Made by a program: the position numbers and the translations under genes. A stretch of DNA of 64,000 nucleotides from Mobula hypostoma (taxonomy: Eukaryota). The DNA lies in NCBI RefSeq assembly GCF_963921235.1, contig NC_086110.1, forward strand, positions 9,548,001 to 9,612,000. The letters are read 5' to 3'. Below, in pieces: positions 1-59,990 of the stretch. The notes under the pieces were generated by a model that was given only the letters and a program-made list of their open reading frames with translations, was not told where the DNA came from and searched no databases. Every line of letters begins with the position of its first letter. Position 1 is the first letter of the stretch.

Positions 1-1835
1 ACACCTCTATCATGTCTCCTCTCATCATCCTCCTCTCCAAAGAATAAAGCCCTAGCTCCCTTAATCTCTGATCATAATTCATACTCTCTAAACCAGGCAG
101 CATCCTGGTAAATCTCCTCTATACCCTTTCCATTGCTTCCACATCCTTCCTATAGTGAGGCGAACACAACTGGACACAGTACTCTAAGTGTGGCCGAACC
201 AGAGTTTTATAGAGCTGCATCATTACCTCGCGACACTTAAACTCTATCACTCGACATATGAAAGCTAACACCGCATAAGCTTTCTTAACGACCCTATGTT
301 CACGTGAGGCAACTTTCAGGGATCTGTGGACATGTACCCCCTGATCCCTCTGCTCCTCCACACCACCAAGTATCCTGCCATTTACTTTGTACTCTGCCTT
401 GGAGTTTGTCCTTTCAAAGTGTACCACCTCACACTTCTCCGGTTTGAACTCCATCTGCCAATTGTCAGCCCACTTCTGCATCCTATAAATGTCTCTGTGC
501 AATTTTCGACAATCCTCTACTATCCACAACACCACCAACCTCTGTGTCGTCTGCAAACTTGCCAACCCACCCGTCTACCCCCACATCCAGGTCGTTAATA
601 AAAATCGCAAAAGTAGAGGTCCCAGAACCGACCGTTGTGGGGCACCACTAGTCACAACCCTCCAATCCAAATGTACTCCCAGCACCACGACCCTCTGCCT
701 TCTGCAGGCAAGCCAATTCTGCATCCACCTGGCCAAAATTCCCTGGATCCCATACCTTCTGCCTTTCTGAATAAGCCTACCGTGTGGAAGCTTATTATAT
801 GCCTTACTAAATTCCGTGTAGATCACATCCACTGCACTTCCCTCATCTATATGCCTGGTCACCTCCTGAAAGAACACTATCAGGCTAGTTAGATACGATC
901 CGCCCTTCAGAACGCCATACTGACTGTCCCTGATCAGACCATGATTCTCTAAATGCCCATAGATCCTACCTCTAAGAATATTTTCCAACAACTTTCCCAT
1001 AACTGACGACAGGCTCACTGGTCTATAATCACCCGGACTATCCCTACTACCTTTTTTGAACATGGGACAACATTTGCCTCCCTCCAATCCTCCGGTACCA
1101 CACCCGTGGACAACGAGGACATAAATAGCCTAGACAGAGGCTCAGCAATCTCTTCCCTCGTCTCGTGAAGCAGCCAGGGGAATATTCCGTTAGGCCCTGG
1201 GGACTTATCCGTCCTAATGTATTTTAACAACTCCAACACCTCCTCTCCCTTAATATCAACATGCTGCAGAACATCAACCTCACTCATATTGTCCTCACCG
1301 TCATCCAGTTCCCTCTCAATGGTGAATACCGAAAAGAAGTATTCATTGAGGACCTCGCTCACTTCCATAGCCTCCAGGCATATCTTCCCACCTTTATCTC
1401 TAATCAGTACTACCTTCACTCCAGTCATTCTTTTTTTCTTCACATAATTGGGGTTTACACAAATCTTGGGGTTTTCCTTTACCCTACTCGCCAAGGCCTT
1501 CTCATGCCCCCTTCCTGCTCTCCTCAGCCCCTTAAGCTCCTTTCTTGCTACCCTATATTCCTCAATAGACCCCTCTGACCATTCCTTCCTGAACCTCACG
1601 TATGCTGCCTTCTTCCACCTGACTAGATTCACCGCCTCACTTGTCACCCGTTGTTCCTTCACCCGACCATTCTTTATCTTCCTCACCGGGACAAATTTAT
1701 CCCTAAGGGATCCAAGAGATCCCTATGAGATGCAAGAGATCCCTAAATATCGACCACATGTCCATTGTACATTTCCCTGCAAAACATCATCCCAATTCAC
1801 AACCGCAAGTTCTAGCCTTATAATTTGCCCTTCCC
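1..1835 (-). mobile_element. CR1-clade LINE ORF2 fragment (RT region and C-terminus), frameshifted
   Basis: ORFs 119..565, 575..1087 and 1015..1686 (-) carry CR1 RT motifs: [38 protein letters not shown]. Confidence 0.92.
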
Positions 1836-3251
1836 CAATTAAAAAGGGTCGCATTAACTCGAAATTGTTGTTTCTTACAATGAGCAGCATAGATATTAAG
1901 AGCGGCGACGATCCATTAAGCCTTTTACAGAATCTTTGATCAAAATATCCATCCACAGCATCGAGGAAAATCAATGAGTGAACATCAACTTCAATGCATG
2001 TCAGAAGAGAGAACCAACAAAATATGCAACTGTGATACATGATCGATTTATACCATGCATTCTCCTCTTTAAGGGCAAAAATTTAGTTTTCATACAGAGA
2101 GGAAACAGAAGACTGTTTCCAGAGCAAGAATTGTAATGAACTTTTCCAGCTCGTGTGCGAAACCAGACAGTGTTGGGCTCCAAGGTTGGTAAGAATACCT
2201 GATTTGGTTAATTGTTAATCGTTTGGAGTTTCGCGAGTTTCTTTTCTCGAGCGAATCGCTCTTCCCCGGCTGCTTTCTGCTTAAACTTAATAAGTTTATT
2301 TTTATAGCCTCGGGGATTCCGTGTTACTTGTGTAATTTAGGTGGGCACCCGATTAGCGCTAATAGTGTTGGTCCTGTTTTCAGAATGTTTCTGTCAGCAT
2401 GTGCACTGGCAATGACTGAACGCAAGTTCGGAGGAAAATTAGACTCCCCTTGATAGACGGCAACCAGGGTTTATCAATACAACTTCCAACACAACGCTGG
2501 TGGTTCATCCCAGCGACAGAGTGAGATGAAACATTCTCAAAGCTAGGATCCCACGAGAAGAGCGAATAAAGAATTAGCATGAATAATCATAGGAACCTGA
2601 AATGCTGTGCCTGTCAAAATGAATTTAAAAGGTTTAAAGAGAACACATCAGAGATTAACGACTCTCATTAAGGCACAATTAACAAATTCAGGTGCTCCAG
2701 AAACCTGGGAGCCCAACGCTGTCCGGCACCCGATGCAGACAAGACGAGTTCATTACGAATGCGTCTCGCGGGTTCGCTCGGCCAAGTCACGGATATTCCG
2801 TTGAATTCTTATGAATAAACTTTTGTCACCGGCTTTTTATTGGTGTCTGTCTTTCCTCCGCTCTTGGGTTCCATTATTGTCAGCGCACAGGAATGGACTG
2901 TGTTGGAATGTAAAAGATCGATCTCAAATAAACCTGGCTAACGGATTGGAAAACAGTTGCCTAAATTACGATATAATAGAAAAGGAATGCACAAGATACA
3001 AATATAAAAGTACAAAAAAGTTAATAATTAATATTCAGAAGGAAAGTACTACTTACAAATGCAATGTTTACAGACTATTTTTAGTTGCAATGTTTAGTGG
3101 ACAACTTGTTCAGTTCCTGAATATGTATATTAATTTACTAATGCTTGGAATTACTCTTATTCCAAAATAAGTAAAAAAACGGCAAATTATACCTCGAGTA
3201 GAATTTAACGCGACATTTTGCGTTTCATAAGAATTCGAGTTTTACAGTTAT

Positions 3252-3257
3252 TTTATT
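3252..3257 (-). promoter_or_regulatory. Candidate polyadenylation signal of the IgSF gene
   Basis: AATAAA on the minus strand about 130 nt beyond the candidate terminal stop. Confidence 0.35.
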
Positions 3258-3384
3258 CTTCACCGGCATCAAAACGCTTGTAGCAGTATTTTGAAAGAAA
3301 AAATCATACTTGGTAGTCCAGAAATGGGATTTGCTATTGTCATGTAAAAGTTATAAATCCAGGCAAAGTATGTGACTGGCATGA

Positions 3385-3425
3385 TCATTGATTCCAAGGA
3401 AGCAGGATCTTACTGCTAGAAGACT
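3385..3425 (-). CDS. Candidate terminal exon (tail QSSSSKILLPWNQ* if spliced directly from the TM exon)
   Basis: Strong pyrimidine tract ttatctttttcttatatctacaag| at 3426, and AATAAA on the minus strand at 3252-3257. Confidence 0.4.
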
Positions 3426-6400
3426 CTTGTAGATATAAGAAAAAGATAACTTTAAAAACAATGTGAAGAAAAAAAAAGCCTTACTGAGAATATAACTGTA
3501 CATAAGGACAATCATCTGCATTTTCTTCAGAAACAGGCTAGATATGCATTGAAAAGAATAGACAATCTCCGTGAGTTGAAAATACCTTTAATTTCGTACA
3601 AAATTTTTCTCCTATGACATTTCCACATTTGTGATCACACGAAGTTTCTCCGTTATGATCATTACCTCTGGAATGGACATAGATGTCATTTTACTCAGAC
3701 ACGGAAGTTGAGACACAGAGTTTAGAAATCAGATTAATTAATTAGGTTTAATTAATTCCATATCGCACTCTATCTTTCTCTTGTACCAGTAAATGATTTA
3801 CAATATAAATACGGAATTGTTTTCTGTTCGTGTGAAGTTGCATCACATCACTAGAATGAAAATAAAATTCATTATTTACTCGCGGTATACCTTGGAAATA
3901 GACAATAAGTCTAGTACATACGTTTGTTCATGGAAATGCACCTCTTGCCAGCGATAATTAGAAGTATCAAAATGACTATACCACCGACTGCACATCGAAA
4001 ACTCCAGATGTTGATAAATTTGTCATCAAATTCTGCAATATTAGAAAGGCGACAGTGAACTTGCTTTGTAAATACGTTACAAAGATTAGGTTTCGGAATT
4101 ATTTGTTGATTCAACTGAATTTTATTTTTAAGAAACTACATTGTGAGATGACAACGCAAAGGCAACCAACAATAGTTTTTTTACTCGTGAGTCGAGAGTA
4201 TGTAAGCAGTTTGTTCCCGGAAAATAATATAATATGAGGCCTAAGTCATATGTGTATTCTGGAACGTTTATTTTATTTGCCTTGCCTTTATATTACAGCT
4301 TCATAATCTTCATAATCCCTATAGACTCAGCAATATTCTCTTAAATTGAATAAATTAATACATATTGCATAACCAGTTACTTATCCGCTGAAGCAAGGCA
4401 CTGTGTACCTAATTAACGTTATATTTGTGAACTGCTGCATCGGGGAAGCATATTCTGAAGCATTGAGAAACTACAGGAGATCGCTAATGCTTGTCCGAAA
4501 ATAGTACTAAAACAGCTGTTCCTATATTCTAGGACAGTAACAGTATAGGATCCAGTGAAAGTAGCTACTAAAACCTCTATTTTTATATTCCAGGACATAA
4601 CAGCTTGGGGACTAAAAGACCTCAATATTCTTTAGGAGGCTCCATCTGACTGCTTAGCAGAAACCCATCACTTCACCTTATATTCACACACTGAAATCTG
4701 TCTGGACTAGCCGTCTATTTCTAGAAAATTAGAACGAGGGGATATTGACTTCATCACCTAACGTCATCAACACCAGTAAAGTTAGAATTCAATTGCTAGT
4801 CAGACAATTTAATTGCTTGTTCACTTCATACCTCGGTAAGAATTCGGAACGGTGTGGATAACAATGGCAGGAGTCCTTAGCGAGATATGTTGCACCAAAC
4901 ATATGTAAACAGTCTCGTTCACCTCTGATTGTTTTACTTGCAAGGAACTAGAAACTTTAAACAACCCTTCAGTATTTTCGTGTTTATAGGTACTTGTATC
5001 TGTGGTGGCCGTAGTACCGTTTTTATACCATGTAACAGTTAATTCTCCAGGGTAAGCTCGAATAAGTTCAGATACCTCCATATCGAATAAGTTCCTTGAA
5101 CCATTTCCCTCTGTCTTCCATGCGCAAGCCAGTGATGAATCCGAACAACCAATTTGCTGCAGACCCCAAACACCTTAATCATCTGGAGTGGCCACCCACG
5201 AGCGACTTTGTCAAACATATGACTAAATTCCACGTAGACAACTTCCACTGCTCAATCTTCATCAATCTCTCTCGTCTCGTTAAAAACGCAATCAAGTTAG
5301 TAAGTCACGAGCTGCCCCGCACAAAGCCATACTGGCTCTCTCTAATTCGGCCAAATACTCATATATCCAGTCCGTTAGAATTTTCTCCAGCCATTTCCCT
5401 ACCACTGACGTGAGACTCACCAGTGTATAGTTCCCAGGATTTTCCTTGATCCTTTCTTACATAGAGATACAACATTAGCCACTCGCTAGTGCTCAGAGAC
5501 CTGACCTACGCCTAGGCAGGACACGAAGATACCCGTCAAGACCCCAGCATTTTCGTCTCTTCCCTCCTTCAATAGATCGAGGTAAATCCATTTAGGCCCT
5601 GGGGACTCAAAGATCTTAATACTCATCAAGAGGCTCAAGCTGACTGCTTAGTAGAAACTCACCACTCCACCATATATACATACACTGAAAGCTGTCTGGA
5701 CTAGCCGACTATTTCTAGAAAATTAGAACTAGGGGATATTGCAATGTATATTGACTTCATCACCTAATGTCATCAACACCAACAAAATTAGAATTCAAAT
5801 GCAAGTCAGAAAATTTAATTGCGTGTTCACTTCATACCTCGGTAAGAACTGGGAACAGTGTGTATAGCAATGGCAGGAGTCCTTAGCGAGATATGTTGCA
5901 CCAAACATATGTAAACAGTCTCGTTCACCTCTGATCGTTTTACTTGCAAGGAACTGGAAACTTTAAACAACCCTTCAGTATTTTCGTGTTTATAGGTACT
6001 TGTATCTGTTGTGGCCGTAGTACCGTTTTTATACCATGTAACAGTTAATTCTCCAGGGTAAAACTCAGCCGTTTCACAGACAAGTGCCAAAGTCGCAGAT
6101 GAGTGCTTGAGAACCCTGGATGAAAGGGTCAATGGAGTTGGAGCAGCTGTGGGGTATAAAATGTAAAACAAAACATTTTGAGGGGAGGTAATTAAACACA
6201 GAATGTGAGAGAATAAAGGCATCCTCTGTAAGGCCGTGTTTTTATCAGTAAATCTGCACCTATCAGCCTGTCTTTCAAGTGCCAAACAGATGAATTACTG
6301 ATATTGGTTAGCTCACACAATGGGGCGCAAGAAGCCGAGATTGGTTCGGATTTATATTAGCTTGCTCTTCAGTTTGTAGTTTTGCTTGGTATGAAATATA

Positions 6401-7149
6401 GAATACCTGCTGTCCTTCTAACCTTTCCATTTTTTTCTGTATAAAAAAATTGAAGTGTAAAACGAGGCAGTAAACGAAGCTTTAGATAATGCATTTAGCA
6501 GAGTTAACAAATTTTGTTGGGTTCTTATATTTCCAGGAATCTCAAAGTGATATGGTAACGTTATATAATAATTTCAGATGTTCCCGCTCACTCATTCTAC
6601 TCACCACACACTGTCAGGTTTGATCCTCCTCCTTCTCCTGTGATTTTTCCGTCACGCGTGACTACGCACTGATAGATTCCCGTATCCTGGGCAGTCGCGT
6701 TCAGCAGTTGAAAATAGCCCCCTCCTTTATTTTTGCTGCCTATTCTCTTCCTGCCAGTAAGTTCATTTTGTAGGTATTCATTCTCCCCCTGCTTCTGCCA
6801 GCGCACTTCAATTCCTGACTGGGCATACGTAAGAGGGATTATGCAATGGAAAGTGATGTTTCCTCCCATCCATATAGTCTCTCGATCAGGAATCTGTGTC
6901 ACGATAATCGAAGCTTCTTCAGCAACTATTAAAACGTGTTGAAATTCGGTTAGTTGTACTGAACTTGGCATCAAACATTTCAGAACGGATTTCGGCATGG
7001 AAATATGGAAAGATGTGTTAAAAATAAATTCTACTGGTTGAACTAATCATAGTTTTGTATATTCTGGCACTTAGAGAAGATGGAAATAAAGTACCTGAGC
7101 AAGTAATCCTCGAGAGAGTCATGAACAAGGAGAGAAACATTGCAGTCAT
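3385..7149 (-). CDS. Multi-exon IgSF receptor gene: leader - VJ-type Ig - C1 Ig - TM(Arg) - short tail (SIRP/NKp30/antigen-receptor-like VJ-C1 class)
   Basis: Exons 7149-7095, 6925-6605, 6146-5838 and 4032-3922 all have GT/AG boundaries in phase 1 and splice into one open frame. The 3' end (3385) is tentative. Confidence 0.88.
3481..3537 (-). CDS. Candidate cytoplasmic exon PVSEENADDCPYVQLYSQ (YxxL)
   Basis: Acceptor ttttcaatgcatatctag| and donor TCA|gtaagg. It needs a phase-0 upstream partner, so its linkage to the gene is unresolved. Confidence 0.3.
   Translation of the reverse strand, partial: PVSEENADDCPYVQLYSQ
3922..4032 (-). CDS. Transmembrane exon (E)FDDKFINIWSFRCAVGGIVILILLIIAGKRCISMNK
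   Basis: Acceptor ctttctaatattgcag|AATTT (phase 1) and donor AAAC|gtatgt. Hydrophobic stretch with one Arg, followed by a KR stop-transfer signal. Confidence 0.85.
4832..5055 (-). pseudogene. 5'-truncated duplicate of the C1 exon
   Basis: 8 mismatches over 224 bp versus 5838-6061 (hand count). It keeps the gtatga donor but lacks the acceptor and the first Cys; CR1 sequence abuts it at 5056. Confidence 0.85.
5056..5607 (-). mobile_element. Internal CR1 RT fragment between the two C1 copies
   Basis: Reads from a KSPGP-like motif to VVYVEFSHMFDKV...WLAHGRQR (ORF 5039..5248). Confidence 0.85.
5838..6146 (-). CDS. Ig C1-set domain exon
   Basis: Acceptor ccccacag|CTGCT and donor CGAG|gtatga, both phase 1. 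C1 hallmarks: LVCETAEFYPGELTVTWYKNG, FKVSSSLQV, YICLVQH. Confidence 0.93.
6605..6925 (-). CDS. Ig V-set (VJ-type) domain exon
   Basis: Acceptor ttttaatag|TTGCT and donor TGTG|gtgagt, both phase 1. Motifs: B-strand Cys (ITFHC), C-strand Trp (VRWQK), DTGIYQC, and a J-like G strand GEGGGSNLTV. Confidence 0.93.
7095..7149 (-). CDS. Leader (signal peptide) exon MTAMFLSLFMTLSRITCS
   Basis: ATG at 7149 (alternative ATG at 7140), hydrophobic core, donor TCAG|gtactt in phase 1 matching the V-exon acceptor. Confidence 0.75.
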
Positions 7150-34159: not shown

Positions 34160-36050
34160 TTGTGACTGTAAAAGCTTTTATAGATATGTGAAAATTGACT
34201 GTAAAAACTTTTATAGATATGTGAAAAGAAAAAGATTGGTTAACAGAAATGTAGGTCCCCTACAGACAGAAATAGGTGAATTGATTATGGGGAGTAAGGA
34301 CATGGCAGACCAATTGAATAATTACTTTGGTTCTGTCTTCAGTAAGGAGAACATAAATAATCATCTGGAAATAGTAGGGGACAGAGGGTCCAGTAAGATG
34401 GAGGAACTGAGGGAAATACATGTTAGTAGGGAAGTGGTGTTAGGTAAATTGAAGGTATTAGAGGCGGATAAATCCCCAGGGTCAGATGGTCTGCATCCCA
34501 GAGTGCTTAAGGAAGTAGCCCAAGAAATAGTGGATGCATTCGATTTTTTCAAAACCCTTTAGATTCTGGACTAGTTCCTGAGGATTGGAGGGTGGCTAAT
34601 GTAACCCCACTTTTTAAAAAAGGAGGGAGAGAGAAACCGCGGAATTATAGACCGGTTGGCCTAACATCGGTGGTGGGGAAACTGCTAGAGTCAGTTATCA
34701 AAGATGTGATAACAGCATATTTGGAAAGCGGTGAAATCATCCGACAAAGTCAGCATAGATTTGTGAAAGGAAAATCATGTCTGACGAATCTCATAGAATT
34801 TTTTGAGGGTGTAACTAGTAGAGTGGATAGGGGAGAACCAGTGGATGTGGTATATTTGGATTTTCAAAAGGCTTTTGACAAGGTCCCACACAGGAGATTA
34901 GTGTGCAAACTTAAAGCACACGGTATTGGGGGTAAGGTATTGATGTGGATAGAGAATTGGTTGGCAGAGAAGAAGCAAAGATTGGGAATAAACGGGACCT
35001 TTTCAGAATGGCAGGCAGTGACTAGTGGGGTACCGCAAGGCTCAGTGCTGGGACCCCAGTTGTTTACAATATATATTAATGACTTGGATGAGGGAATTAA
35101 ATGCAGCATCTCCAAGTTTGCGGATGACACGAAGCTGGGTGGCAGTGTTAGCTGTGAGGAGGATGCTAAGAGGATGCAGGGTGACTTGGATAGGTTAGGT
35201 GAGTGGGCAAATTCATGGCAGATGCAATTTAATGTGGATAAATGTGAGGTTATCCACTTTGGTGGCAAAAACAGGAAACCATATTTTTATTTGAATGGTG
35301 GCCGATTTGGAAAAGGGGAGGTGCGATGAGACCTGGGTGTCATTATACACCAGTCATTGAAAGAGGGCATGCAGGTACAGCAGGTGGTGAAAAAGGCGAA
35401 TGGTATTCTGGCATTCATAGCAATAGGATTCGAGTACAGGAGCAGGGATGTACTACTGCAGTTGTACAAGACCTTGGTGAGACCACACCTGGTGTATTGT
35501 GTGCAGTTTTGGTCCCCTAATCTGAGGAAAGACATTCTTGCCATAGAGGGAGTACAAAGAAGGTTCACCAGATTGATTCCTGGGATGGCAGGTCTTTCAT
35601 ATGAAGAAAGACTGGATGAACTAGGCTTATACTCGTTGGAATTTAGAAGATTGAGGGGCGATCTGATTGAAACGTATAAAATTTTAAAGGGATTGGACAG
35701 GTTAGAGGCAGGAAGATTGTTCCCGATGTTGGGGAAGTCCAGAACGAGAGGTCACAGTTTGAGGATAAAGGGGTAGCCTTATAGGACCGAGATTAGGAAA
35801 TACTTCTTCACACAGAGAGTGGTGAATCTGTGGAATTCTCTGCCACAGGAAACAGTTGAGGCCAGTTCATTGCCTATATTTAAGAGGGAGTTCGATATGG
35901 CCCTTGTGGCTAAAGGGATCAGAGAGTATGGAGGGAAGGCTGGTACAGGGTTCTGAGTTAGACGATCAACCATGATCATACTGAATGGCGGTGCAGGCTC
36001 GAAGGGCCGAATGGCCTACTCCTGCACCTATTTTCTATGTTTTCTATGTT
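34160..36050 (+). mobile_element. 5'-truncated, relatively young CR1 LINE (RT through 3' tail)
   Basis: ORFs 34083..34562, 34592..35329 (VYLDFQKAFDKV, KFADDTK) and 35357..35776; (TTTCTATG)n tail. Confidence 0.93.
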
Positions 36051-42599: not shown

Positions 42600-45500
42600 T
42601 CGGCAGTTTGAACGGGGCACGACTGCGCAAGCGCATGAAAGTCGGCTCATGAAACAGCGGAAGAGTTTAAAAAATGAGTAGATAACGGAGCGGGCGACGT
42701 AGTAGTGGGAGACAGAGTAGGAAGGCTTTGCCTCGATAGGGTTCGGCGATCAGAGGCTGAGGACGAGCCTGCTCCCAGTGAGATAAGGCCGGGTAAGTTC
42801 CTTTAATTACTCGAATTAACATCGGAGTAGGTAATGGAAGCAGCAGTTAGGGCAGTCGAGTTCACTGTTTGCAGTATGTGGGACGTCAGGGCGAGCGCAA
42901 TTTTCCCTGTTGACTACAACTGTAAAAAGGTGCATCTAACTGCAGCTCCTCACAAACAGAGTTAGGGAACTGGAGCTGAAGCTGGATTATTCGTGAGGCA
43001 GAGGCAGAAATAAACAAGATTTACAGGGCGATAGTCACCCCTAAAAGTCAGGAGACAGGTAGCTGGGTGACGATCAGGAGAGGGAACGGGAATAGACAGA
43101 GTGAACCGTTCCCATCAATAATAAGTATACCATTTTGGATACAGTTGGTGGGGAAGACCTAGCAGGGACAAGTTGCAGTGGTTGTGTCTCTGGCACCGAG
43201 AATGGACCCTCAGCTCAGAAGGGAAGAAAGGAAGAGAGGAGAGCAGTAGTGATAGGGGATTCGATAGTTAGGGAGACAGATAAGAGGTTCTGTGGAAGAA
43301 ACCGAGAATCCCGGATGGTCTGTTGCCTCTCTGGTGCCAGGGTCCGCGATATCTCGCATCGAGTTCAAGGTATTCTCCAGAGGGAAGGTGAGCAACCGGA
43401 TGTCGTGATCCATGTAGGGACCAATGACGTGGACAGGAAGAAGGAGGAGGTCCTGCAAAGAGAATTTAGGGAGTTAGTTGCAAAGTTGAAGGACAGGACT
43501 TCCAGGGTTGCAATCTCAGGATTGCTACCAGTGCCACGTGCTAGTGAGGCAAGAAATAGGAAGATAATGCAGTTAAATACGTGGCTAAGGAGTTGGTGCA
43601 GGAGGGAGGACTTCATGTTTCTGGACTATTGGGCTTGGTTACAGGGAAGGTGGCACCTGTTCCGACGGGATGGGTTGCACCTGAACTGGAGCGGGACTAA
43701 CATCCTTACGGGAAGATCTGCTAGTGCTGCCCCGGGGGGTTTAAACTAGATTTGCAGGGGGATGGGAACCAGAGTGTTAGAGCAGATAGTAAGGTGGAGG
43801 AGGATGAAGATCATGTGAGAACTGCAGGTATAGTGCATGGAGTAAAGCCAGATCTAACCTATAAAGAGGATTTGAGGAAAAAGAAACACAATAAAGGGTG
43901 TAACGTTAGTAAGGTAGAAGGGCTAAAGTGCGTGTACTTCAATGCAAGAAGCATCAGGAACAAAAGTGATGAACTGAGAGCTTGGTTACATACATGGAAT
44001 TATGGTGTAGTGGCCATTACAGACACTTGGCTGGCACCAGGGCAGGAATGGATTTTCAATATTCCTGGATTTCAGTGCTTTAGAAGGGATAGAGAGCAGG
44101 GGGAGGGGAGGAGGGTGGCATTACTGGTCAGGGATATTGCTACAACTACAGAAAGGGCGGGTAATGTAGCAGGATCCTGTTTTGAGTCAGTATAGGTGGA
44201 AATAAGGAACAGGAAGGGAGCGGTTACTCTAGTGGGAGTATTCTATAGGCCCCCTGGTAGCAGTAGAGATGCCGAGGAGGAGATTGGGAGTAAAATTTTG
44301 GCAAAGTGGGTGACTTTAACTTCCCGAATATTGATTGGCACCTGATTAGTTGCAATGGTTTAGACGGGGCAGAGTTTGTTAAGTGTGTCCACGACGGATT
44401 CCTGTCACACTATGTTGACAGGCCGACTAGGGGGAATGCCATACTCGATCTAGTATTAGGTAATGAATCGGGTCAGGTCACAGGTCTCTCAGTGGGTGAG
44501 TATCTGAGGGATAGTAACCACCGCTCCCTGGCCTTTAACATCGAAAAGGATATGATCAGAGAGGACAGGAAAATTTTTATTTGGGGAAGGGCAAATTATG
44601 AGGCTATAAGGCTAGAACTTGCGGGTGTGAATTGGGATGATGTTTTTGCAGGGAAATGTACTATGGATATTTCGTCGATGTTTCGGGATCTCTTGCCGGA
44701 TGTTAGAGATAAATTTGTCACGCTGAGGAAAAGAATGGTAGGGTGAAGGAACCATGGGTGACAAGTGAGTTGGAGAATCTAGTCAGGTGGAAAAAGGCAG
44801 CATACATGAGGTTCAGGAAGCAAGGATCCGATGGGTCTATTGAGGAATATAGGATAGCAAGAAAGGAGCTTAAAAAGGAACTGAGGAGACCAAGAAGGGA
44901 GCATGAGAAGGCCATGGTGAGTAGGGTATAGGAAAACCACAAGGCATTCATCAATTACGTGAAGAGCACAAGGATGACAGGAGTGAAGATAGGACTGATT
45001 AGAGATAAAAATGGGATGATGTGCCAGGAGGCTGTGGAAATGAACGAGGTCCTCAATGAATACCTATCTTCGGTATTTATCAGCGAGAGGGAAATTGATG
45101 ACGGTGAAGACACTATGAGTGAGGTTGATGTTCTAGAACATATTGATATTAAGGGAGAGGAGGTGTTGGAGTTGTTAAAATACATTAGGACGGGTAAGTC
45201 CCCGGGCACTGACGAAATATTCCCCAGGCTGCTCCACGAGGCAAAGGAAGAGATTGCTGAGCCTCTGGCTAGGATCTTTATGTCCTCGTCCTCCAGGGGA
45301 ATGGTACCAGAGAATTGGAGTGAGGCGAATGTTATTCCCTTGTTCAAAAAAGGTAGTAGGGATAGTCCGGGTAATTATAGACCAGAGAGCCCTGCGTCTG
45401 TGGTGGGAAAGCTGTTGCAAAAGATTCTTACAGATAGGATCTATGGGCATTCAGAAAATCTTGGTCTGATCAGGGTCAGACAGCATGGCTTTGTGGAGGG

Positions 45501-58707: not shown

Positions 58708-59990
58708 TGTCACAATGGCGGGGGCTTTGGGAGCAAGGGTGGACCCAAATGCAAGACACATCTTGTGAGGTTAATTAAAATTTAGTTTATTGTTCGATAC
58801 CAGGAGAGCAAAGCAGAAGCAGGAATAGCGAACAGGGTAAGGACTCGGGACTACGACTAGGCTGGGACCAAGGGTCTGGGCTTGGACTCAGAATCGGCTC
58901 CCAGAACTAGAGGAGACATGAAGAGGCTAGGGTATGGACTCCGAGCCAGAGAATGGGCAAGGCCCCAGTACCTGGGTCTTGCCTCGGGCTCGGACCCCAG
59001 AACCAGGCATGGACATGACATGGGCTAGGGAGAGGAGGAACATGGAAAACAGGTCTCGGGAGAGCCATGGACACATACACAGAACACAAACGGAACCATG
59101 GCCACATACACAGAACACAAAGTCGGGACCCCTCCTTCGGTACAGGACATAGGGCCGGGACTCATGACCCTTCGCAGGGCAATGGCAAGACGGCCTGACT
59201 TAGCACACGGAGGTGAGGACAAGACAAGACAAGACATGACCCCCCGCGGGGCAACGGCAAGACGGCCTGACTTACCCCACGGAGGCGAGGACAAGACAAG
59301 ACCAACACGAAAGCACACCAGACAGTACCTATCTAGCTCCGGCGATAGAACTGGACCGAAGTGCAGGCGAGGGCTGCAGACGAGGGCGAGAGGCGAGAGG
59401 GGCAGAGAACGGATACAGACAGGGGGGTAGGACAGGAATCACAGACTGCCAGGGTCAGGACTTGACTCGGAACTGGGAAGCCGCCAGGGCCGGGACTTGT
59501 CTCGGTACTTGAATGCCGCGAGTGCCAGGACTTGACTCGGTACTTGAATGCCGCCAGGGCCAGGACCAGGACTTGACCTGATACTTGAATGCCGCCAGGG
59601 ATGGGACTTGACTTGGTACTTCAATGCCGCCAGGGCCAGGACAGGACTTGCTACTTGAATGCCGCCAGAGCCAGGACTTGACTTGGTACTTGAATGCCCC
59701 CGGAGCCAGGACTTGACTTGGTACTTGAATGCCCCCGCAGCCAGGACTTGACTTGGTACTTGAATGCCTCCGGTGACAGGACTTGACTCGGTACTTGAAT
59801 GCGGCCAGGACAAGGACTTGACTTGGTACTTGAATGCCGCCAGGACCAGGACTTGACTTGGTACTTGAATGCCGCCAGGGCCAGGACTTGACTTGGTATT
59901 TGAATACCGCCAGGACCAGGACTTGACTTGGTACTTGACTGCCCCCGGAGCCAGGACTTGACTTGGTACTTGAAAGCCCCCGGAGCCTGA
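58708..59990 (-). mobile_element. Truncated LTR of the same family as 17394-18564
   Basis: Shared tgtcacaatgg...ggacccaaatgcaag start and shared cggcctgacttaccccacggaggcgaggacaaga blocks; minus-strand AATAAA near 58790; no matching far terminus found. Confidence 0.7.
59448..59988. repeat. Minisatellite, about 15 copies of a 35-bp unit (ccaggacttgacttggtacttgaatgcc...)
   Basis: The ggacttg core recurs at about 35-bp spacing. Confidence 0.92.

Follow-up and report, generated by a model that had tools for sequence, protein, structure and literature searches.

A 64-kb window of the genome of the lesser devil ray (Mobula hypostoma), by which we mean the whole stretch of DNA analyzed here, carries on its minus strand a gene that encodes a receptor of the immunoglobulin (Ig) superfamily with one V-set domain, one C1-set domain and a transmembrane (TM) segment. 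Translation and inspection of splice sites yielded a coding sequence of 807 nt for a 268-aa protein, distributed over four exons with an open frame throughout; all introns are of the GT..AG type and every junction is in phase 1. An earlier note, made from the sequence letters, had proposed four exons joined in phase 1 into one frame of about 265 aa, and this length required correction. The nearest relative of the protein is XP_062923444.1 (P0151), an inhibitory-type paralogue from the same species. The features of the gene are as follows (slashes within motifs and between positions mark exon borders):

7095..7149, minus strand: leader exon, with the ATG at 7149; 18 codons plus 1 nt (MTAMFLSLFMTLSRITCS); donor CAG/GTACTT
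6605..6925, minus strand: V exon of 321 nt, phase 1 to 1, with Cys46, Cys105 and Trp60; it ends in NLTVC
6609..6632, minus strand: J-like G-strand motif GGGSNLTV (GxGSxLxV), uninterrupted inside the V exon
5838..6146, minus strand: C1-set exon of 309 nt, phase 1 to 1, with FYP, SSSL and YICLVQH
3911..4032, minus strand: TM exon, encoding the connecting peptide, the transmembrane segment and an 11-residue tail, with the stop codon at 3913-3911
3995..3997, minus strand: CGA codon of Arg241, one nucleotide away from the GGA/GGC (Gly) of the inhibitory paralogue

The protein begins with a signal peptide of 18-19 residues. As the earlier note had read it, the V exon (6925-6605, with the donor GTG/GTGAGT at 6605) already contains the J-like G strand GEGGGSNLTV with no intervening recombination signal sequence, and the five N-glycosylation sequons that it listed were all found (NIT41, NAT94, NLT121, NGT166 and NET200). 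The cysteines of the C1 domain are Cys149 and Cys206, and Cys125, which follows the G strand (NLTVC), is unpaired. The charged transmembrane segment was found as well, because Arg241 sits within the hydrophobic run FINIWSFRCAVGGIVILILLIIAG. Just 16 hydrophobic residues come after Arg241, which should therefore lie in the outer third of the membrane helix, as judged from the sequence.

The paralogue P0151 is a 355-aa protein that RefSeq names 'tyrosine-protein phosphatase non-receptor type substrate 1-like isoform X1', and it has an orthologue in M. birostris (XP_072135210.1). The window protein is identical to it at 244 of 268 positions (91%), with 96% identity in the V domain and 97% in the C1 domain, and the two genes share the exon plan, the junctions, the J-like motif and the Cys after the G strand. 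They differ in that P0151 has Gly at the position of Arg241 (WAFGCAIGG, compared with WSFRCAVGG in the window protein), in that 22 of the 114 nt compared in the TM exon are different, and in that P0151 has a 97-aa tail with four tyrosines resembling immunoreceptor tyrosine-based inhibitory or switch motifs (ITIM or ITSM; LTYAAV, SSYAQV, LTYATV and TEYAEL, pattern [SILVT]xYxx[ILV]). P0151 is also transcribed in the runs examined. The window gene is no orphan, since its product shares 91% of its residues with that of an annotated gene bearing ITIMs, and it is better framed as part of a pair of activating and inhibitory receptors. No well-characterised family claims the gene.

In the read-through model, the cytoplasmic tail of the window protein is KRCISMNKRMY and contains no ITIM. 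The TM exon retains the phase-1 donor of the family, AAAC/GTATGT, at 3922/3921, two codons before the stop; the stop at 3913-3911 (MY and stop) is therefore reached only by read-through. This donor sits where the TM exon of the family ends (NKR/ in the window, NKRKHG in P0005 and NKSKHG in P0151), and in the alignment the P0151 counterpart continues into KHGDTD... Such a position would be expected if the four-exon model were incomplete and the TM exon spliced to cytoplasmic exons past the left edge of the window, in which case the product would be a receptor with Arg in its TM segment and a longer tail, partly inhibitory or tyrosine-poor. We regard this as rather unlikely, since a read-through stop after two codons is also the outcome in the RefSeq models of short-tailed relatives, several of which likewise end a few residues past the membrane segment. 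In positions 1-3925 of the window, tblastn with 12 relatives, an ITIM motif scan, a relaxed tblastn search with three tails and a hidden Markov model (HMM) of the tail run on six-frame pieces revealed no tail exon, and no minus-strand match fell below E 1.6.

One short segment in this region, 2769-2804 on the minus strand, reads KNSTEYP*LGRANP and faintly resembles the C-terminus of the partner, KSKNTEYAELQRAKP, with a stop inside the tyrosine motif. The tblastn E value was 16 and the tail HMM did not recover the segment; the resemblance may be due to chance.

A HMMER scan with the V exon returned 176 matches, 43 of which were below 1e-10, and at least 76 proteins among the matches share the V-plus-C1 plan. 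All members whose names were looked up belong to sharks, rays or the chimaera Callorhinchus, which agrees with the suggestion of the earlier note that the gene represents a lineage-specific, little-characterised class of innate receptors in cartilaginous fish. The RefSeq names of these relatives (SIRP-alpha-like, SIRP-beta-1-like, tapasin-related-like, CD276, NCR3LG1-like, Ig lambda-like and MHC II beta-like) are automatic and inconsistent, and the family is thus predicted by annotation pipelines under contradictory names. Several M. hypostoma members are located on one 80.6-Mb record and have nearby accession numbers. A literature search found no paper on this V-C1 family, with which the 'shark B7H6' of Flajnik et al. 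2012 may overlap.

Within this family, Arg recurs at the position equivalent to 241 in short-tailed members of other species, such as Scyliorhinus XP_038662022 (WAIRCTVGG, with an 11-residue tail), Mustelus (WISRCVMGG) and others. The ITIM members listed with their TM motif have Gly or another small residue at this position. We labelled a protein as Arg/short-tailed if Arg stood at the start of the hydrophobic core and the tail contained no [SILVT]xYxx[ILV], and placed the labels on an ectodomain tree of 47 proteins obtained by a quick search. The well-supported branches of this tree forced at least eight changes of the label, and each Arg/short-tailed member adjoined an ITIM member; the window protein was the sister of P0151, in a starred three-member clade that also included the M. 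birostris orthologue. From the sequences, the short-tailed forms look as if they were derived from ITIM forms many times over.

Arg241, the short tail, the ITIM-bearing partner and the recurrence of Arg-bearing short-tailed members beside ITIM members in sharks, rays and chimaera lead us to propose that the window gene is the activating-type member of a paired receptor and a structurally intact duplicate of the inhibitory V-C1 gene P0151, a reading to which we assign odds slightly better than even (approximately 0.55). Both sides of a pair are represented, namely a partner with a near-identical ectodomain and ITIMs, and a copy with a charged TM residue and a short ITIM-less tail in which the donor is nevertheless retained. 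The window protein would reach the cell surface, possibly as a dimer linked by a disulfide bond through Cys125, and would bind the same ligand as its inhibitory partner. By analogy with SIRP-beta, NKp30 and activating KIR, Arg241 would pair with an acidic residue of an adaptor that carries an immunoreceptor tyrosine-based activation motif (FcR-gamma-, CD3-zeta- or DAP12-like), and gene conversion would keep the V-C1 block similar to that of the partner.

The exon borders of the gene could be compared with RNA-type contigs from four runs that represent two Mobula species. These contigs join exactly at 7095/6925, 6605/6146 and 5838/4032, and differ from the window at 5 of 321 nt in the V exon, 3 of 309 in the C1 exon, 22 of 114 in the TM exon and 13 of 96 in the leader plus 5' untranslated region. 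They extend approximately 1 kb past 3919 with sequence unlike that of the window, the loose end at 3919 being the sequence of the P0151 tail, and in both Mobula species they carry C instead of G at plus-strand position 3997 (Gly, not Arg). The translated differences reproduce residues of P0151 (S7F, T35I, T108M, T114I, H140D, L145V, G184R, R241G, V244I, I247M and V248A), which identifies the contigs as transcripts of the paralogue. The contigs accordingly confirm the exon borders as the real ones of the family. The earlier note had held that a lack of spliced transcripts would make the gene a pseudogene; splicing at the exact exon borders was found, but the transcripts belong to the paralogue, so pseudogene status keeps a share of the probability, as weighed below.

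One RNA-type run also contained an unspliced contig of low depth (2.9) that covers 6150-6462 in the V-C1 intron and differs from the window at 4 of 313 nt. If this contig represents pre-mRNA of the partner, the V-C1 intron was homogenised along with the exons; alternatively, it could be DNA carry-over.

The similarity between the two genes is mosaic. The V and C1 exons are approximately 99% identical in nucleotides to those of the partner, whereas the leader and TM exons are only 81-86% identical. There are eight differences in V and C1, seven of which are listed, and one of these seven is synonymous; the eighth corresponds to G119E in P0151. At least five of the 10 listed differences in the TM exon are synonymous. 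Because the synonymous share differs between V/C1 and the TM exon, we infer that the exons have had different histories and that selection alone is insufficient to account for the pattern. The sequences fit two genes that diverged much earlier and whose ligand-binding block was made alike recently by gene conversion or recombination, a pattern reported for paired opposing receptors (PMC3210942).

Three of the four differences in the V domain lie in or beside the loop between the F and G strands (T108M, T114I and G119E). Over positions 6609-6877 and 5973-6105, three of the differences are Thr to Ile/Met and three surround this FG loop, which resembles the third complementarity-determining region; such a small number of differences does not allow a test for selection.

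Several observations weigh against the activating reading. All RNA-type contigs over the exons of the four runs, including those over the whole TM exon, carry the letters of the paralogue, although contigs cannot prove absence. No protein that matches the window copy was found in a collection of 5.8 billion proteins, and for this reason RefSeq probably does not call the copy as coding. Seven of the eight V/C1 differences from the partner change an amino acid, which fits adaptation or relaxed constraint. The retained donor makes the 3' end uncertain, because the mature transcript may use it to reach exons further to the left than the window extends. Finally, signs of decay are present in the form of CR1-type fragments of long interspersed nuclear elements (LINEs) throughout the locus and a partial exon duplication.

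Some of these observations would also be expected if the gene were a silent, decaying duplicate, that is, a young pseudogene of the inhibitory receptor whose tail was cut off by LINE insertions and whose V-C1 frame is open only through recent overwriting by the functional partner. The lack of a window-copy transcript in runs in which the partner was assembled at a depth of 15-30 agrees with this explanation, as do the lack of a database protein, the LINE debris inside the gene and on both sides of it, the partial duplication of the C1 exon and the lack of tail exons within 3.9 kb downstream. However, the homogenised block does not extend to the leader and TM exons, which have diverged by 14-19%; both have nevertheless stayed open and retain the signal peptide and the hydrophobic core, along with all four splice-site pairs. 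Moreover, the change from Gly to Arg affects exactly the residue that is Arg in short-tailed relatives from other species that look functional. In the second Mobula species, the DNA runs contain approximately 0.4 of the words sampled across the whole stretch, a figure from word counts and not from alignment; since this matches the expectation for approximately 3% divergence, the window copy may predate the split of the two Mobula species. We therefore consider a pseudogene possible but doubtful, and retain an intact activating-type receptor as the preferred explanation.

We further analyzed the identity of the two domains. In Pfam, where the cut-offs are 26 bits for V-set and 21 bits for C1-set (PF07654), the V exon scored 33.2 bits with V-set and 37.3 bits with Ig_3, and the C1 exon scored 53.3 bits with C1-set (E 3.5e-14) and passed the C2-set_2 (CD80-like; 24.5 bits) and C2-set_3 (27.6 bits) models only marginally. 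The AlphaFold models contain nine strands in the V domain (pLDDT, the predicted local distance difference test score, 90.3) and seven in the C1 domain (pLDDT 90.6). The G strand of the V model is split into 93-97 and 101-105 about the glycines, and G98-x-G100-S101-x-L103-x-V105 has the canonical J spacing and is nearly invariant among 30 aligned family members. The motif lacks the Phe or Trp before the first Gly, which is replaced by Glu in the window protein and by Asn in the family.

The fold neighbours of the V model in the PDB form a flat list (Z 12-14, at most 26% identity), with the IgNAR V domain at the top (Z 14.3, 26%) and NCAM Ig1, CD79b, basigin and T-cell receptor (TCR) V-beta among the others; NCAM, CD79b, basigin and titin are within one Z unit. 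In Swiss-Prot, the fold matches were TMIGD2, CD79b, Ig kappa V, IgW VH, NKp30 and CD8-beta. For the C1 model, the top 30 Swiss-Prot fold matches were all C1-set domains (MHC II beta2 or Ig C), which together with the Pfam score corroborates the claim of a true C1-set domain. Among 50 listed PDB matches of this model, the Z values ranged from 12.2 to 14.4, with HLA-DP beta2 at 14.4, Ig light-chain C at 14.3, B7-H6 C at 14.0, UrIg2 at 13.9 and SIRP-gamma lower at 12.9, the top matches being tied within approximately 1 Z unit. The C1 exon also matched Ig CH, UrIg2 and SIRP-alpha in the PDB by sequence. Judged by these models, the V domain belongs to the V-set and has a J-like strand, but no special kinship to antigen receptors can be demonstrated for it, and the C1 domain is about equally near to MHC II beta2, Ig C, B7-H6 C, UrIg2 and SIRP.

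Two other approaches did not sharpen this placement. When the family alignments A1 and A2 served as profiles against the PDB, the matches were chiefly multi-domain proteins and antibodies, and families could not be told apart; the look-alikes in the ESM Atlas were generic clusters of the V, C1 and C2 sets. A homodimer test with two copies of the P0151 ectodomain (residues 19-230) scored 0.20, under the mark, and speaks neither for nor against a dimer.

The earlier note had related the gene to the pre-RAG ancestor of antigen receptors. This kinship was not borne out, given the mixed V neighbours at no more than 26% identity and the tied C1 neighbours. In its strongest form, the proposal would make the chondrichthyan V(J)-C1 family, with its short-tailed Arg-bearing members, the direct descendant of the non-rearranging VJ-C1-TM receptor ancestral to TCR and Ig chains. 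The gene does match a TCR chain in its plan, with the V region and J-like strand in one exon, a C1 domain, a basic residue in the membrane and hardly any tail; UrIg2 ranks among the closest C1 matches, and the IgNAR V domain heads the V fold list. However, NCAM, CD79b, basigin and titin lie within one Z unit among the V neighbours, SIRP-beta and NKp30 have the same layout features and are not antigen-receptor ancestors, and the short-tailed forms look derived from ITIM forms repeatedly. UrIg and UrIg2, moreover, have three or more C domains (PMC12227049). Direct descent is thus highly improbable; if it were true, adaptor coupling through a basic TM residue would predate RAG-mediated rearrangement.

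Among known systems, the SIRP-alpha/SIRP-beta pair offers the nearest analogue of how the window gene would work as the activating-type member of a pair. In SIRPs, C1-set domains follow an N-terminal V domain that includes a J-like strand, and inhibitory and activating members have near-identical ectodomains; the activating SIRP-beta combines a basic TM residue with a short tail, and the inhibitory SIRP-alpha carries four xxYAxx tyrosine motifs. The C1 domains of SIRP match that of the window protein (2wng, E 2.3e-13; 4i2x, Z 12.9). SIRPs differ in having two C1 domains, compared with one in the window family, and in that SIRP-beta uses a Lys at a deeper level of the membrane helix; in the fold rankings, the V and C1 domains of SIRP are both inconspicuous. 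SIRP proper was rejected, as there is a single C1 exon between the V and TM exons and the second copy at 5046-4833 is 5'-truncated and not spliced in.

B7-H6 (NCR3LG1) resembles the window family in having a V domain, one C domain, a TM segment and a tail with tyrosine motifs, and its C domain (4zso_E; Z 14.0, root-mean-square deviation 1.4 A, 33% over 90 residues) showed the highest identity and the lowest deviation among the C1 matches. It differs in that the window V domain retrieved no B7 V domain, that of B7-H6 included, among the top 30-50 matches, except PD-L2 at rank 43. B7-H6 is a ligand and, to our knowledge, is not known as an activating/inhibitory pair.

NKp30 (NCR3) and TCR chains resemble the window protein in that their V domain is J-like, their membrane segment contains a basic residue and their tail is very short, and NKp30 is, as stated above, among the V fold matches; their basic TM residue couples to acidic residues of CD3-zeta/FcR-gamma or CD3. 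They differ in that NKp30 lacks a C domain and TCR V regions rearrange, and the identities are approximately 20%. Tapasin and tapasin-related proteins were rejected, because the V domain starts directly after the 18-19-residue leader and there is no large N-terminal tapasin domain, and no named PRARP was present among the matches. UrIg and UrIg2 are similar in that they have a non-rearranging single-exon VJ followed by C1-type domains and occur in elasmobranchs, and UrIg2 matches the window C1 domain (9dmx, E 4.4e-14; Z 13.9, 26%). These proteins, which carry at least three C1-type domains after the VJ and are either secreted or very long membrane forms, were rejected for a window protein of 268 aa with one C1 domain: UrIg is a liver-secreted protein with three C domains, UrIg2 has nine to eleven C domains, and neither ITIM nor pairing through a TM Arg is described for them (PMC12227049).

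Innate immunity repeatedly features activating and inhibitory receptors that are paired and have a near-identical outer part (KIR, SIRP, PILR and Ly49), and their origin is attributed to pressure from pathogens that turn the inhibitory member to their own use. The ray locus shows this arrangement in a family whose V(J)-C1 ectodomain is antibody-like. The window copy contributes an Arg-bearing partner that is apparently unannotated, a Gly/Arg switch by a single nucleotide at the position of an Arg that recurs across species, and a mosaic similarity indicative of recent homogenisation of the ligand-binding exons. If the window copy is expressed, it would provide a simple system for dating adaptor-coupled activating receptors in jawed vertebrates.

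Two further features lie within the intron between the C1 and TM exons:

4606..5041 (compared with 5600-6047), minus strand: tandem copy of the C1 exon, limited to its 3' two thirds, and of the intron behind it; the repeats are 95% and 87% identical, and tblastn gives 90% over 81 aa
5047..5599, minus strand: retroelement-like filler of approximately 550 nt between the C1 copies, covered by many divergent high-depth contigs with loose ends, as in a repeat family

The C1 pseudo-exon at approximately 5046-4833 has an open frame and an intact donor, lacks an acceptor and is joined by no contig. The exon part of the duplicate differs at 8 of approximately 220 nt (3.6%), and the intron part at approximately 11% plus a 12-nt gap, so the divergence is uneven. 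The one ORF (open reading frame) tested in the filler, 5292-5420, had no Pfam match, RVT_1 being found only in other ORFs of the window.

No other Ig exon or cellular gene was found in the 64-kb window, the rest of which is LINE debris. A patchwork of CR1/L2-type LINEs is found at 43105-43746 (plus strand), 34511-35326 (plus strand), 578-1129 (minus strand) and many other places, and its pieces encode a GDSL-esterase-like ORF1 (Lipase_GDSL_2, 1.5e-14) and reverse transcriptase (RVT_1, down to 6e-33). At 59448-59978, a 35-nt tandem repeat is present in 15 copies with 84% matches and contains long open frames on the minus strand (SSTKSSPGPGGIQVPSQVL...), and a 72-nt two-copy repeat stands beside it at 59163-59302. 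The 35-nt repeat probably represents satellite DNA or a transposable-element tail.

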